Shown here one piece after another: positions 6,920 to 53,745 of a stretch of 64,000 nucleotides of DNA. The translations under genes and the position numbers were made by a program. Location: the sequence record OU343168.1; one strand, 5' to 3'. The first letter of the stretch is position 1; each line of letters opens with the position of its first letter. Below the pieces are notes generated by a model. The model did no database searches. It worked only from the letters and a program-made list of their open reading frames with translations, and was not told where the DNA came from.

Positions 6920-8014
6920 ATGATAGGACAAGTATTGTCTCTAGGTTCCTTCTTCTTGGACATCGCCAAGCAGCTGTATCCTGAGAGCAAGGATATCGCC
7001 TCGGCGGCCCAAGTAACGGACCGGGCCAAACATTCATACAATGTGATTTCCACGAGCTCGGTACAACGTAGTGCAGCCCGCACTATTTTGAATCCGATGG
7101 TCGCCATTGAGGGGTCCCTTATCCACCAGGAATACACCCCGGATCTCATGACGGTGGTGACCCTACGGGATATTACCGCAACATTGACTCACCTCGCGTT
7201 GCAGAATTCCGTGGAAGTGGGGGTTAAGGTGGAGAACCTCATCGGGAGCATCAGTCCCAACCGCGGTGGGATGATGAGTCTCTTCTCGGGACTGGAAGCG
7301 ATGGATAACAACATCAAACCCAAAGACCCGGCTACCCCGAACCAAGTTCAGGTCAATAGCAAGACCTACAGTGAACTGATGGAGTTCACCCCCCTGGCGG
7401 TGGGTAAAGTGGTGAATGCTACGCTCTACGGAGCGAATGGTAACAAGATCGAAGTTCCCCTCACCATTCGTCAGATCCCGATCCCGGTGACCCATGAGAA
7501 CCTGGTGACCCTCTTCTCTGCTGCTAAACCCGATGAAGGGTTGAAAATGCGGTGGATCATGAAGAAGAGTGGTGAGATCACCACGCCTCAGTGGTTTGAT
7601 GGTAGTGACATCGTTAAAGCCCGTTTTAAAGCGAAGATGGGTGATACCTCTGGGTATTACAAGGAAGCCATGAAACGGGATACCCAGAATAAACTGGAAG
7701 CGATTCGCACGGGGATCATTAGCATGAACTCCATGGCGAATACGGTTATCATCACTCAAGATACGGCGACCCAGCTCGAACTGGAAATCGGTCGTAAGTT
7801 TGCCGATCCGGTTAGCCGTGAAAAAATCTTCGAGAGTATTTCGGCGAATACCCTCGTTATCGTGAATGATGACCGGGGTATTTTCACGTTCTACACCGAT
7901 GGTCAAACCATGCCGGAAGTTTACACACGTCGAGACTTGTCCGTTAAGTCCAAGAAAGAAGGCTCTGCGAACACGCTACAAGATCTCGTTAAATTGCTCA
8001 ACGGGGGTCTCTAA
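6920..8014 (+). CDS. virion head/inner-body protein (phiKZ gp89-like), 364 aa
   Basis: Divergent from the gp88-like gene; internal SGLEA protease-type motif; synteny. Confidence 0.55.
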   Translation: MIGQVLSLGSFFLDIAKQLYPESKDIASAAQVTDRAKHSYNVISTSSVQRSAARTILNPMVAIEGSLIHQEYTPDLMTVVTLRDITATLTHLALQNSVEVGVKVENLIGSISPNRGGMMSLFSGLEAMDNNIKPKDPATPNQVQVNSKTYSELMEFTPLAVGKVVNATLYGANGNKIEVPLTIRQIPIPVTHENLVTLFSAAKPDEGLKMRWIMKKSGEITTPQWFDGSDIVKARFKAKMGDTSGYYKEAMKRDTQNKLEAIRTGIISMNSMANTVIITQDTATQLELEIGRKFADPVSREKIFESISANTLVIVNDDRGIFTFYTDGQTMPEVYTRRDLSVKSKKEGSANTLQDLVKLLNGGL

Positions 8015-13088: not shown

Positions 13089-13120
13089 CTACAGGTAGGG
13101 GGATCTCCCCCTACCTGTAG
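13089..13120. terminator. 14-bp hairpin
   Basis: ctacaggtaggggg-atct-ccccctacctgtag, followed by cctttatgtcg. Confidence 0.75.
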
Positions 13121-22923: not shown

Positions 22924-22950
22924 CCCTACCTAAGCCGAGCTTAGGTAGGG
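22924..22950. terminator. 12-bp hairpin
   Basis: ccctacctaagc-cga-gcttaggtaggg. Confidence 0.7.
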
Positions 22951-24116: not shown

Positions 24117-24152
24117 CCCCTACCCCCTAGCTCTCAGGCTAGGGGGTAGGGG
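24117..24152. terminator. 15-bp hairpin between convergent genes
   Basis: cccctaccccctagc-tctcag-gctagggggtagggg. Confidence 0.75.
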
Positions 24153-28585: not shown

Positions 28586-28660
28586 GTCCTGCGAATTACG
28601 GGCGGCTTGAGTATCCCGAGTTGCCCTAGTAGGTACCTCACGGAAATTGCGTGTACCATT

Positions 28661-28698
28661 AGCCCTACCCACTCCCCTAACCGGGAGTGGGTAGGGCT
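28661..28698. terminator. 16-bp hairpin after the capsid gene
   Basis: agccctacccactccc-ctaacc-gggagtgggtagggct. Confidence 0.75.
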
Positions 28699-28732
28699 AT
28701 ATTTGCAGTTATACCGTTTATTGGAATATTTT

Positions 28733-34005: not shown

Positions 34006-34037
34006 ACCTACCCTAGTGGAGATCCACTAGGGTAGGT
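34006..34037. terminator. 14-bp hairpin
   Basis: acctaccctagtgg-agat-ccactagggtaggt. Confidence 0.75.
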
Positions 34038-34598: not shown

Positions 34599-34763
34599 AT
34601 GAAATCCAGCGGCCTGCTTCTTCTGTGCGTTGGTGTTATGTTCGGCTTCTTGTTCGTGAACGCGAACTACGGCCAAGAGACTCAGGAAGATGAATCCCAA
34701 GAAGTGATCTTGGGACATCGTATTGCCCCTAACGGGCAAGAGATCCTGGTCTACCAACACTGA
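34599..34763 (+). CDS. small signal-peptide/membrane protein, 54 aa (not in ORF track)
   Basis: Hand translation MKSSGLLLLCVGVMFGFLFVNANYGQETQEDESQEVILGHRIAPNGQEILVYQH; AGGAAGG RBS; hairpin downstream. Confidence 0.6.
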   Translation: MKSSGLLLLCVGVMFGFLFVNANYGQETQEDESQEVILGHRIAPNGQEILVYQH

Positions 34764-40757: not shown

Positions 40758-40833
40758 TCCGTGATAGCTCAGTAGGTAGAGCAACTGTTTCGTAAACAGT
40801 AGGTCCCGGGTTCGAACCCTGGTCACGGAACCA
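40758..40833 (+). tRNA. tRNA-Thr (anticodon CGT)
   Basis: Full 76-nt cloverleaf: acceptor TCCGTGA/TCACGGA, D arm GCTC/GAGC, anticodon arm ACTGT-TTCGTAA-ACAGT, T loop TTCGAAC, encoded CCA. Confidence 0.93.
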
Positions 40834-41367: not shown

Positions 41368-41400
41368 CCCTCCTACCTCCTTTACAGGGAGGTAGGAGGG
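41368..41400. terminator. 13-bp hairpin
   Basis: ccctcctacctcc-tttacag-ggaggtaggaggg. Confidence 0.75.
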
Positions 41401-41423
41401 TTTATTACGGTATAGCGTATTTT

Positions 41424-41436
41424 AAACCTAGATTAT
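41424..41436 (+). promoter_or_regulatory. putative early promoter AAACCTAGATTAT
   Basis: Third copy of the AAACCTAnATTAy motif, about 30 nt before the 41466 start. Confidence 0.55.
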
Positions 41437-41465
41437 TGATGCGTTAAGCCACGAGGAATAAATCA

Positions 41466-42008: not shown

Positions 42009-42149
42009 ATGTTTTGGAAATTCACGTGTTACAACAAGGACACTTGGGAAGCCCCCCACCAAATGACCTTGATAGAAGCGGTTGAACTCTTTTTGCGAGA
42101 AACCCAATACACCCAGTGGGATATTCACTTCGTTGAGAATCTCCACTAA
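42009..42149 (+). CDS. small hypothetical protein, 46 aa (not in ORF track)
   Basis: Hand translation MFWKFTCYNKDTWEAPHQMTLIEAVELFLRETQYTQWDIHFVENLH; fills the gap between two genes. Confidence 0.45.
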   Translation: MFWKFTCYNKDTWEAPHQMTLIEAVELFLRETQYTQWDIHFVENLH

Positions 42150-42188
42150 ACCGTTGTTAAACAATCTGTTAAACGGAAGGATAGCATT

Positions 42189-43104: not shown

Positions 43105-43181
43105 ACTTAATAGGTCGTTTAGCCTTTAAGCTACCGAGAGTGACAGATTAGATACCCCATCACTGTATTTTGGAGAAGGTT

Positions 43182-44165
43182 GTGAAACATAAAGAAACAC
43201 CCTTTCAACGAGCCAGCTGTGGTCATGTCCTTCAGGTCGGTGACAACGGGTCTTGCCATGTGGGGGATCACGGGACCGCCATCGCTGGAAAAAATAGCCT
43301 CGCCACCGCTGCGAACAATGGACACGCTGTTTCTGGAGACTATGGGACAGCCATCGTTGAACGCTTTGGTATCGCCTCTGCCGGAAATAAAGGCATGGCT
43401 ATCGCCGGAGATTGCGGCAGTGCCACCGCTGGAGATCATGGTATCGCCACCGCGGGAAATTACAGCACGACTACCGTCGGATACTTAGGGACTGCCACCG
43501 CTGGAAAGAAAGGGATAGCTACCGCTGGAGATTGGGGAACCGCTATCGTTGGACTCGATGGCGTCGCGTCTGCCGGAAAGAATGGTAAGATCCACATCCA
43601 GTACTTCGACAGTGAAGCCATTCGTTACCGCACAGCAGTTGGGTATATCGGTGAGGGCGGTCTCGAACCTGGCGTTCCTTACCAATTGGATGAAAACCAC
43701 GAGTTCGTAAAGGGAGACATTGCCATGACAAAATTCTCTACAGAGGGTCGCGTGAATATACTCTTCCGAGGATTGGGTGTAGGTCTTATCAACGTCCAGG
43801 TCGTAAGGGTCACTAAGGGTATAGGACATCCCAAACCCTTTTTCCATATTGAGGGATCTGAAGACAAGGGTTACCGTTTGCTTCATAACGGGAGTGAATG
43901 GATTGATCAGGTCTTTGAGGCTAAGAAAGCTGTACTCTTCATTGAGTCCCTCTACCCCCCTGTGACACCCGATAAGGAGACCGTGAAACTTACGGTGTCT
44001 GAGGATCAGCAAATCCTGGTTAAAGTACGGCGAGTGAATAAGCTGGCCTTGGATGCTGTTGTGTTCCACATTGATACCCTGGGTGGTGCGTATCAGGTAT
44101 CCTATACCGAGCAACTGACCCCAGATTTCAATCAGTTGACTCATGTTGAGTTAGTGGTCATTTAA
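43182..44165 (+). CDS. octapeptide-repeat (AGxxGxAT) beta-solenoid protein fused in frame to a second domain
   Basis: GTG 43182 after GGAG; about 14 Gly/Ala/Thr octapeptide-like units; internal RBS plus in-frame ATG at 43725. Confidence 0.7.
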   Translation: MKHKETPFQRASCGHVLQVGDNGSCHVGDHGTAIAGKNSLATAANNGHAVSGDYGTAIVERFGIASAGNKGMAIAGDCGSATAGDHGIATAGNYSTTTVGYLGTATAGKKGIATAGDWGTAIVGLDGVASAGKNGKIHIQYFDSEAIRYRTAVGYIGEGGLEPGVPYQLDENHEFVKGDIAMTKFSTEGRVNILFRGLGVGLINVQVVRVTKGIGHPKPFFHIEGSEDKGYRLLHNGSEWIDQVFEAKKAVLFIESLYPPVTPDKETVKLTVSEDQQILVKVRRVNKLALDAVVFHIDTLGGAYQVSYTEQLTPDFNQLTHVELVVI

Positions 44166-44176
44166 GGACGTCAATC

Positions 44177-44422
44177 ATGGCTAAAAAGAACCTTAAGGTG
44201 TTCAAGACCCACGGGGAATTCGATACGGAGGTGATTCGTCGTGCTCGACTTATCCTCGACGCCAGGGGTTACCGGGGGAAGATATGTGTGAACGCACTCG
44301 GTGAAAGTTCTGCGTGGAATAAAGCAGATCGCAATGAGGACGGTCATCGTCTGATCGACGACGACACTATCGCCGAAGTGGCTCGCTCGATGGTTTACGA
44401 CACTCTCGATTACGGAGAGTAA
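44177..44422 (+). CDS. hypothetical protein, 81 aa
   Basis: AAGGA RBS. Confidence 0.65.
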   Translation: MAKKNLKVFKTHGEFDTEVIRRARLILDARGYRGKICVNALGESSAWNKADRNEDGHRLIDDDTIAEVARSMVYDTLDYGE

Positions 44423-44428
44423 GTTTTA

Positions 44429-44775
44429 ACACGTTGACGGTATTATATACGGACAACGTGTCATATTAATCCGCGTCTGCGGGTCCCGCCTGAACTTAAG
44501 GGTGATAAGGTGTGGTACTCGTCGAGTATGAGCTTGGCAAAGCTCATACTCCGAACCCTATGGACGGTATAGCCGCTATCGTCAAGTCACACTGTTCAGC
44601 TATTGACCTGGACTTCAGTCTCCTTTTCGGTGCTGTCGACGGGAAGGTTCTCGGACGGTGGGGCGGCTTGTGAATGTGCTAAACTAGCGCTGGTTTGAGC
44701 ACCTAGCAAGTTAAGGGGAGGAGGGACAACCATCGGCTCTAAGCGGGTGGGTTCCTCCTCCCCTCCGTCCTTTTA
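44429..44775 (+). ncRNA. putative multi-helix structured ncRNA, about 300-340 nt
   Basis: At least 8 helices, including a perfect 12-bp stem with a GNRA loop, long-range pairing 44483-90/44657-64, and a 3' hairpin followed by a poly-T tract; no ORF. Confidence 0.5.
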
Positions 44776-44878
44776 TTTTTTTTTTTGTCTTAATACCGTG
44801 TTACTCGACCGGTTTCTAACGGATACAGACTGTACGAATATTATGTCTTATCCCCCGACTTACCAAGAGGTTAAAGCG

Positions 44879-45355
44879 ATGTCGAAAAACAACGATCAGA
44901 AGAACCCCTCCACTCCTGAGGACGAGAAGGCTAAAGCGGTAACCACCCCTCCGGTGACTCCTCCCGCTCAGCCAGCTCCCGCTACCCCTCAAACGTCTCC
45001 CAAAGCCTCGAAAGACGAGAGTGAAGAGGATAACCAGGACTTCGACAACATTCTGATCAATGTACTGTCGCTCTATGACAATGGGGAATTCAATAAAGAA
45101 CTCCTTATTGAGATGGTAGAAGAAGTCCGTAAGGTTACCCGTCCGGGTCTTATCCCCGAAGAATACTACATCGACGTCGCCGTACAGCGTTATGTGGAAT
45201 TCGCTAAACGCAAGAAGATCGACCTGAAAAACCTGTCGATCCTGGTGGGTAATCCTGAAACCTCGGTAGAACTGCGCTCGCTGAACTTCTACCGTGCAAT
45301 GGAAGGCCTGGGTCCGACCTTCTTCATGCCGTACATCATTGAGAGTAAAGAGTAA
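44879..45355 (+). CDS. hypothetical protein with Pro/Thr-rich disordered N-terminus
   Basis: ATG 44879 after GAGG preferred over upstream starts. Confidence 0.65.
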   Translation: MSKNNDQKNPSTPEDEKAKAVTTPPVTPPAQPAPATPQTSPKASKDESEEDNQDFDNILINVLSLYDNGEFNKELLIEMVEEVRKVTRPGLIPEEYYIDVAVQRYVEFAKRKKIDLKNLSILVGNPETSVELRSLNFYRAMEGLGPTFFMPYIIESKE

Positions 45356-45366
45356 CACCGAATAAA

Positions 45367-45408
45367 CCCCTAACCCCTAGCCCTGTTAAAGGGGCTAGGG
45401 GTTAGGGG
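45367..45408. terminator. 17-bp hairpin between convergent genes
   Basis: cccctaacccctagccc-tgttaaag-gggctaggggttagggg. Confidence 0.75.
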
Positions 45409-53713: not shown

Positions 53714-53745
53714 CCTACCTGTAGCCTTTGCGGGCTACAGGTAGG
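53714..53745. terminator. 13-bp hairpin between convergent genes
   Basis: cctacctgtagcc-tttgcg-ggctacaggtagg. Confidence 0.75.

Follow-up and report, generated by a model that had tools for sequence, protein, structure and literature searches.

The window analysed here, 64,000 nucleotides (nt) of sequence record OU343168.1, comes from Pseudomonas phage vB_PaeM_phiRU (100% identity over 901 bases around the element described below) and carries a conserved non-coding element between the homologues of genes gp101 and gp102 of phage EL, both on the + strand. The element lies in the gap at 44423-44878, the largest non-coding one found in the window, and comprises a hairpin (H1), a core of 253 nt at 44462-44714 and an intrinsic terminator at 44714-44786, all on the + strand. 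The core of ~250 nt is non-coding and under clear purifying selection, it runs into the terminator, and it occurs in a single genus, Elvirus. RNA-level function is plausible because the element is non-coding, terminator-ended and under purifying selection. We tentatively propose, with a probability of about 0.45, that it forms the untranslated 3' end (~290 nt plus terminator) of the early gp098-gp101 operon.

Purifying selection on a non-coding core

Nine further records are 92-98% identical to the 901-base stretch (including EL, PaBa1, GXNNE2/GXNNA8, MIZ-Pa99, vB_PQ1, HHBS8_1 and HHBS47_1), and all matching records are EL-like nucleus-forming jumbo phages of P. aeruginosa, belonging to the genus Elvirus of the Chimalliviridae. 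Searching with gp101 identified further metagenome Elvirus contigs, with protein identity down to 81%. The alignment built from GenBank records and metagenome contigs holds 16 copies representing 14 distinct sequences. Identity over the gap, the length of which is kept, does not fall below 94.5%, and this applies to ten GenBank Elvirus records and eight metagenome loci alike.

Diversity in the core was compared with that at the third codon positions of the flanking genes gp100-gp103, using 15 sequences. Nucleotide diversity is 1.76% in the core versus 7.05% at the flanking third positions, and variable sites make up 6.7% versus 20.0% (Fisher p about 1e-6). Diversity is higher than in the core, too, in the two adjacent spacers (3.2% and 4.3%) and at the first and second codon positions of gp101 (3.6-4.6%). 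The same tendency can be seen in locus L021, where the gp101 protein is just 81% identical and the gap DNA 95% identical. Neither an open reading frame (ORF) nor an unusually stable fold accounts for the conservation of these ~250 nt.

A preliminary description of this sequence had noted an ORF-free gap, and this holds in that there is no conserved ORF between the gp101 stop (44422) and the gp102 start; judged from its reading frames, the gap is non-coding. A small protein missed in this gap would be the least expected explanation of the element, and we regard it as very improbable. The sole sizeable + strand frame, ORF53 (44512-44673, GTG start), does have a plausible Shine-Dalgarno (SD) sequence (AAGGG, 9 nt before the GTG at 44512), was called by one gene caller in one locus (L025), and lies where tiny ORFs are annotated in some GenBank records. 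However, five of the 14 distinct versions have the frame interrupted and two have it shortened, its substitutions at codon positions 1/2/3 (2/2/1 among eight strains) show no third-position bias, and it has no family match in Pfam or PHROGs. ORF45 (44596-44733, - strand) is frameshifted in every other strain by a 1-nt indel at 44694. The only frame open in all strains, on the - strand, would encode 28-34 amino acids (aa), changes solely non-synonymously, and has an SD sequence that abuts its ATG. Other apparent gaps of ~500 nt on a greedy gene map of the window were rejected, as real genes cover them.

At the downstream end of the gap, the alignment indicates that the true start of gp102 is the ATG at 44879 behind the SD sequence AAGAGG (44865-44881, + strand), which is conserved and yields a product of 158 aa, and not the GTG annotated in EL. 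The upstream in-frame starts, ATG 44843 and GTG 44747, are removed in most strains by a 1-nt indel at 44852, and gene callers start the 158-aa product at the equivalent position on eight metagenome loci. The GTG start annotated for gp102 in the EL RefSeq record (NC_007623, 106935-107540) makes the gene read across the terminator and the T tract (window 44747-44878).

Terminator and local hairpins

The predicted intrinsic terminator (inverted repeat I2, 44714-44786) consists of a 14-bp G+C-rich stem (44714-44727/44751-44764) capped by a small inner hairpin and followed by UUUUA and U11, so that on the + strand a G+C-rich stem-loop stands directly before a U-rich tract, the defining arrangement of intrinsic terminators. 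The final hairpin and long T tract of the preliminary description are thereby confirmed, the tract being T4-A-T11. The stem is 93% complementary and invariant in 14 versions, and where the terminator varies, the change is wobble-compatible or affects a loop, a bulge or the tail. The T run, present on the + strand only, is 6-11 long among strains, as slippage would give. T11 at 44776-44786 is the longest homopolymer of the window, and no other hairpin in the window precedes a run of six or more T; a simple terminator scanner skipped the terminator, its loop being longer than 8 nt.

Perfect hairpins are abundant in this genome, with 15 in the 64 kb whose arms reach 10 bp or more, versus 0.3 in shuffles. 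Most of them fall into a family with perfect stems of 12-17 bp and CCTACC...GGTAGG arms, located at gene ends and without long T runs (2841-2872, 13089-13120, 22924-22950, 24117-24152, 28660-28699, 34006-34037, 41368-41400, 45367-45408 and 53714-53745). These have the look of generic terminators that serve the RNA polymerases of the phage itself. The hairpins of the core do not carry the CCTACC/GGTAGG signature.

All helices proposed in the preliminary description are Watson-Crick or G-U complementary where they were placed, and the strongest were recovered as inverted repeats (I1, I2 and I4). H1 (I1, 44429-44461), 7 nt past the gp101 stop, is an imperfect 15-bp palindrome with an AT-rich UAU loop; it occurs as two haplotypes with one mismatch each, at different places, and may be a weak stop or processing site. 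The core contains a small predicted hairpin at 44469-44484 (AUCCGC-GUCU-GCGGGU), the sole change in which is in the loop (T>C in L027). Further along, a hairpin at 44563-44583 (GACGGUA-UAGCCGC-UAUCGUC) is invariant in 14/14 versions, and complementarity and the predicted fold both point to a hairpin domain at 44667-44710 (CUUGU...GCAAG around GUGCU-AAACUA/UGGUUU-AGCAC). Three phiRU-specific changes are clustered in this domain (44675 G>T, an additional T at 44694, and 44699 A>G), with one outer pair lost and two inner pairs gained.

Between these lies a perfect 12-bp hairpin (I4, 44524-44551), with no T tract after it. It had been credited with a GNRA tetraloop, which is incorrect: the loop is GGCA, the third base of which is a pyrimidine (C), and there are no GNRA or UNCG loops among the predicted hairpin loops of the element. 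In L021 this hairpin shows a compensatory change from A-U to G-C (44531/44544) plus a change from G-C to G.U (44549). EL, PaBa1, GXNNE2 and L022 lose a pair close to the loop through G>A at 44542, and RNAalifold favours a pairing of 44509-44516 with 44542-44550 over the 12-bp hairpin. On the evidence of the aligned versions, the local hairpins and the terminator are maintained.

Fold stability and covariation

The 373-nt region folds at -150.6 kcal/mol, with z = -6.0 on the + strand and -5.5 on the reverse strand; the equivalent whole region in phage EL has z = -3.5. The value of -6.0 stems from local hairpins, namely H1, the 12-bp hairpin and the terminator, and other terminator-bearing stretches of the genome reach z = -7 to -8.5. 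The core by itself (44462-44714) has z = -2.25 on the + strand and -1.6 on the - strand in phiRU, and the equivalent core has -0.93 in EL and -1.98 in HHBS8_1, to be compared with a background of mean -1.13 and standard deviation 1.43 from 319 windows of 300 nt across the phiRU genome. A comparison of folding energy with shuffled sequence, as had been suggested in the preliminary description, therefore favours the whole region but not the core. The core with its proposed long-range helices is not more stable than the genome background, and the idea of a ~300-nt multi-branch RNA is not supported. The predicted fold is not strand-specific. In the sliding scan, an apparent gap at 34.5-34.9 kb was also highly structured (z about -7), because a small ORF there (MKSSGLLLLCVGVMFGFLFVNA..., 34599-34763, with a signal-peptide-like start) sits between two strong terminator hairpins.

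The change in L021 is the only compensatory one among these sequences of at least 94.5% identity, and covariation cannot be judged because the divergence among versions is too small. The long-range helix gtcccgcc/ggtggggc is complementary in phiRU, as described earlier, but acquires a C.A mismatch in 7/14 versions through G>A at 44661; the change is tolerated, as U.G to U-A, when the register is moved by three bases to CCGCCU/GGGCGG. With the proviso that RNAalifold itself drives variable columns out of stems (mean ratio of 0.54 in column-shuffled alignments), its + strand consensus has variable columns at 9/216 paired versus 19/137 unpaired positions, seven of the nine being wobble-compatible and two pair-breaking. 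The corresponding figures for the - strand are 13/214 versus 15/139, with eight compatible and five broken. One-sided changes suit G.U wobble better on the + than on the - strand.

Distribution and searches for relatives

The element has no match to a known RNA class, in agreement with the preliminary description: Rfam 15 (4227 models) at gathering threshold yielded just a tRNA at 40758 in the whole window. Permissive Rfam scans (E <= 10; 44300-45000 and 44462-44714) returned only low-scoring miRNA and snoRNA chance matches on hairpins, and no RNase P family at E <= 10. ARAGORN detected no tmRNA or tRNA-like gene in the gap, its only prediction in the whole window being tRNA-Thr at 40758-40833. 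The stretch UAAGGGUGAUAAGGUGUGGUA (44496-44516) has some resemblance to the conserved CR-II/III stretch of bacterial RNase P RNA and to the T-box sequence; the resemblance was not used as evidence, and as no covariance model backs either likeness, both were rejected. A group I or group II intron was also rejected, as there is no Rfam intron match, gp101 is complete, and gp102 has its own SD sequence and ATG.

The BLASTN and nhmmer checks that had been recommended were carried out. Among 50,697 phage records, BLASTN at E <= 10 shows no copy beyond Elvirus, and nhmmer finds no related sequence in ten chimallivirus loci that share gp103 (51-66% aa identity). The genes gp099-gp102 are absent from these ten gp103 loci as searched by tblastn, and genes are tightly packed at that position. 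IMG/VR scans with gp101 and gp102 recovered EL itself only, and protein searches with the same two genes gave no copy of the element beyond Elvirus. Contigs carrying distant gp101 homologues contain no sequence related to the element: in three of four the next called gene is no more than 30 nt away, and in the fourth a 364-nt uncalled gap contains a 109-aa ORF without a match to the element. Exact 22-mers of the invariant core have 0 matches each in bacterial/archaeal genome and JGI metagenome collections, and there is no second copy of the element in the window. Across the collections searched, the element thus appears confined to Elvirus.

Further proposals for its nature were considered and rejected. 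As a possible small RNA (sRNA) target, 7344-7360 is complementary to core positions 44599-44615 (17 nt, one G.U); the match lies ~420 nt inside the coding region of the ORF at 6920-8014, and with a blast E of 0.29 it was treated as chance. The GGA motifs expected of a CsrA/RsmA sponge are not enriched and are not presented in loops. A likeness to Pseudomonas CRISPR repeats, which would make the element a repeat mimic, is unconvincing. The idea of a mobile element came from a 9-bp inverted repeat (44437-44445/44791-44799), expected ~0.5 times per 500 nt by chance, around which no convincing target duplication was found.

Transcriptional setting and interpretation

The sequence ATTTTAAACCTAGATTATT, annotated as "putative phage promoter" in the EL RefSeq record, is found at 41419-41437 on the + strand, upstream of gp098. 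In EL the motif also precedes gp079-gp081, including a gene annotated "polymerase", and the window has just two copies (0.01 expected), at 41419 and at 28728, the latter preceding the EL "polymerase" gene. Where jumbo phages have RNA polymerases of their own, the early promoters used by the virion enzyme carry a conserved AT-rich motif of this kind, and middle and late promoters are not predictable from sequence (PMC7598289). Because there is no copy of the early-promoter motif in the gap, the nearest being 3 kb upstream at 41419, the simplest reading of the element is as the 3' end of gp098-gp101. No perfect hairpins of at least 10 bp were found between 41400 and 44524. The gap has no + strand sigma-70-like promoter, the H1 loop motif has no repeat in the window, and neither ACACGT-type palindromes nor GTGKTACTCGWC are enriched. 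On the - strand, a sigma-70-like promoter (TTAATA-16-TATAAT, 10/12 matches, 44442-44469) overlaps H1 in antisense orientation to gp101, the relevance of which is doubtful as the phage brings its own RNA polymerases. Nothing shows that the element is an independent unit, and the discrete non-coding RNA (ncRNA) gene of the preliminary description is not sustained.

From the annotated motif we infer the promoter assignment and the early timing: the RNA polymerase, presumably the virion enzyme injected with the DNA, would start at 41419, transcribe four to five small genes, cross the gap and stop at the hairpin and U-tract of 44714-44786. A stop at this position would insulate gp102 and the convergent late structural gene gp103, and the terminator stem and U-tail would give a nuclease-resistant 3' end like that of sRNAs. 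The core might then accumulate as a long 3' untranslated region (UTR) or, if cleaved near H1, as a 3'-derived ncRNA of ~300-330 nt. It would probably act via sequence-specific contacts on a few local hairpins, with a protein partner or by RNA base-pairing; such contacts are more likely than a large ribozyme- or riboswitch-like architecture because the core is conserved in sequence far beyond fold stability. The earlier suggestion of a phage-encoded structured RNA of unknown class is therefore retained for its non-coding nature, lack of a known family, terminator and selection, but not for the multi-branch fold.

Several observations weigh against assigning the element to the 3' end of the operon. 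The promoter is known as an annotated motif only, and a start site may lie inside the gap; a literature search yielded no transcriptome for any Elvirus. Most mapped 3' UTRs of Pseudomonas phages are shorter than 100 nt (10.1101/2023.10.13.562163), and ~290 nt plus terminator would be an unusually long one. Sequence conservation by itself does not distinguish RNA-level from DNA-level function. Structural support is weak: the RNAalifold depletion ratio of 0.30 is reached by 6/120 column shuffles (~5% tail), and single-sequence structures show no significant stem depletion of variable sites (odds ratio 0.48-0.99).

An independent ncRNA gene of ~300-330 nt, driven from in or near H1 by a middle or late promoter that escaped recognition, seems unlikely to us. 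It would fit a conserved non-coding core that ends in a strong terminator, and since phiKZ-like middle and late promoters are almost without recognisable consensus, the absence of a motif is weak evidence; small intergenic transcripts of phiKZ do have their own start sites (10.1101/2023.10.13.562163). Nevertheless, the gap contains neither the early-promoter motif nor a + strand sigma-70-like promoter, the genome shows no enrichment of the repeated GTGKTACTCG motif, and the core fold is no better than background. We likewise give low odds to a conditional terminator or leader of gp102 (an attenuator or riboswitch-like element), in which the core would sense a factor and set termination versus read-through at 44786. 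The order of conserved core, terminator, 92 nt, and gp102 SD sequence and ATG suits such a leader, and premature termination in 5' UTRs yielding short RNAs is common in phiKZ and 201phi2-1 (PMC11512511; 10.1101/2023.10.13.562163). Without the terminator 3' arm, the 5' arm GGGAC (44723-44727) is predicted to pair with GUCCC at 44483-44487, a strand otherwise placed in the long-range helix, making a possible anti-terminator. These are, however, G-rich and C-rich tracts in which chance pairing is easy, with all bases invariant, and the alternative pairing I5 is lost in most strains (CCGUCC to CGCUCC). The terminator is moreover very strong (14 bp, U11), Rfam gives no known aptamer match, and gp102 is without known function. 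A more ambitious proposal, and one on which we would not count, is a new class of phage regulatory RNA, which the virion polymerase would make within minutes of infection, before there is a phage nucleus. Such an RNA would either capture an RNA-binding protein or ribonuclease of the host, as a decoy or sponge, or sense a factor and time gp102 expression as a conditional terminator. If true, either version would explain why ~250 nt without a described RNA family are nearly fixed across EL-like phages.

Function at the DNA level, with the palindromes serving as a protein-binding platform or as a packaging or replication signal, is distinctly improbable. What is conserved is the sequence rather than the stability of the fold, both strands fold equally well, and a DNA inverted repeat would account equally for the perfect palindromes and for the compensatory change seen in the 12-bp stem. 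On the other hand, the G+C content of the element is ~50%, equal to that of coding sequence, with no AT-rich unwinding stretch; there are no iterons in the gap (one direct repeat only, 16 nt at 75%); the site is at the end of a co-directional block beside a convergent junction and not at a point of divergence; and the wobble-type changes favour a + strand RNA. Just as small a chance is left for an ordinary spacer of terminator-type hairpins, with low diversity arising from sampling or a local recombination sweep. The richness of the genome in perfect hairpins, a whole-region z like that of other terminator-bearing stretches, and the origin of all known copies from one narrow genus are in its favour. 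Against these stand a core diversity four-fold below that of synonymous-type sites on both sides and below that of the adjacent spacers, the improbability of a sweep limited to 250 nt, and the lack of the generic signature in the core hairpins.

Gene neighbourhood and annotation

Gene order around the element agrees with EL gp098-gp103, with the convergent virion structural gene gp103 following gp102. The last gene before the element, the gp101 homologue (44177-44422, + strand), encodes 81 aa of unknown function. An exhaustive HMMER search found full-length gp101 homologues of 79-96 aa on other phage contigs, and as these are complete and stand alone, gp101 is not a split gene. The N-terminal half of the gp100 homologue (43170-44165) consists of Gly/Ala-rich short repeats matching Pfam DUF4774 (E 2e-12). 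Between gp098 and gp099 there is a 46-aa ORF (MFWKFTCYNKDTWEAP..., 42010-42150), which is called as a gene in several metagenome Elvirus contigs and not in the EL RefSeq record. The tRNA-Thr found by both Rfam and ARAGORN has the anticodon CGU, and NC_007623 returned no RNA feature for the matching interval from gp095 to gp096. In records PV472050, PQ516283, PQ287644 and PQ287649 (loci L002, L003, L004 and L007), wrong-strand ORFs are annotated over gp100 and gp101 and tiny ORFs inside the gap; two of the four have an odd or empty taxonomy line.

Significance and comparison with known systems

Nucleus-forming jumbo phages are candidates for phage therapy and models of viral compartmentalisation, and their ncRNAs are almost unexplored. 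With a core more conserved than the non-synonymous positions of gp101, the element is a well-defined target for transcript mapping and deletion in Elvirus. Should the core turn out to be a stable early RNA that has a partner, the unnamed UTR-derived candidates of Pseudomonas phages would gain a functional example. If it is just a long 3' UTR, the start annotation of EL gp102 is still corrected, and a type of terminator distinct from the generic one is marked out.

The generic terminators of this phage, with their perfect CCTACC...GGTAGG arms and no long T run, differ from the one at 44714-44786. The latter resembles canonical intrinsic terminators and the 3' ends of Hfq-type sRNAs in its predicted G+C-rich stem followed by a long U tract, and departs from them in the extra inner hairpin and a 23-nt apical region. 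Attenuation riboswitches and leaders share with the element the order of conserved region, terminator, and SD sequence and ORF, as well as a predicted competing pairing for the terminator 5' arm. Unlike them, it has no aptamer match, no covariation and no ligand clue, and the function of its downstream gene is unknown.

The 5' UTR sRNAs of phiKZ and 201phi2-1 (PMC11512511; 10.1101/2023.10.13.562163) are likewise structured and genus-conserved, have a terminator upstream of the next ORF and belong to nucleus-forming jumbo phages, but they are shorter than 250 nt and have a mapped promoter just upstream, whereas the gap here is without a recognisable promoter. The EL sRNA proposed in that work is upstream of the phiKZ gp182 homologue, a different locus (PMC11512511; 10.1101/2023.10.13.562163).

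Closest in kind are the UTR-derived ncRNAs. Phage PAK_P3 has the 3' UTR-derived, genus-conserved ncRNA1 (~210 nt) and ncRNA2 (~120 nt) (Putzeys et al., 10.1101/2023.10.13.562163 / PMC10914365), and in phiKZ and 201phi2-1 there are many UTR-derived ncRNA candidates, conserved within the genus only and of unknown function (10.1101/2023.10.13.562163; PMC11512511). For phiKZ, candidates have also been reported from the Grad-seq of Gerovac et al., as cited in 10.1101/2023.10.13.562163. Like the PAK_P3 and phiKZ RNAs, the Elvirus element is non-coding, lies downstream of a gene, has an intrinsic terminator and no apparent start of its own, and is conserved only in its genus. Unlike them, it is known from sequence alone, whereas they were detected as separate, abundant species by Northern blotting and long-read RNA-seq; it would also be longer (~300-370 nt), and no similarity to non-Elvirus phage records was found. 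By definition, such ncRNA candidates contain no ORF of at least 10 aa with a canonical SD sequence; here ORF53 has a possible SD sequence and is broken or shortened in 7/14 versions. On position, 3' terminator and genus-level conservation, the element would fit the class of UTR-derived phage ncRNAs; it has no named RNA class, but elements of its kind have been described before in related phages.

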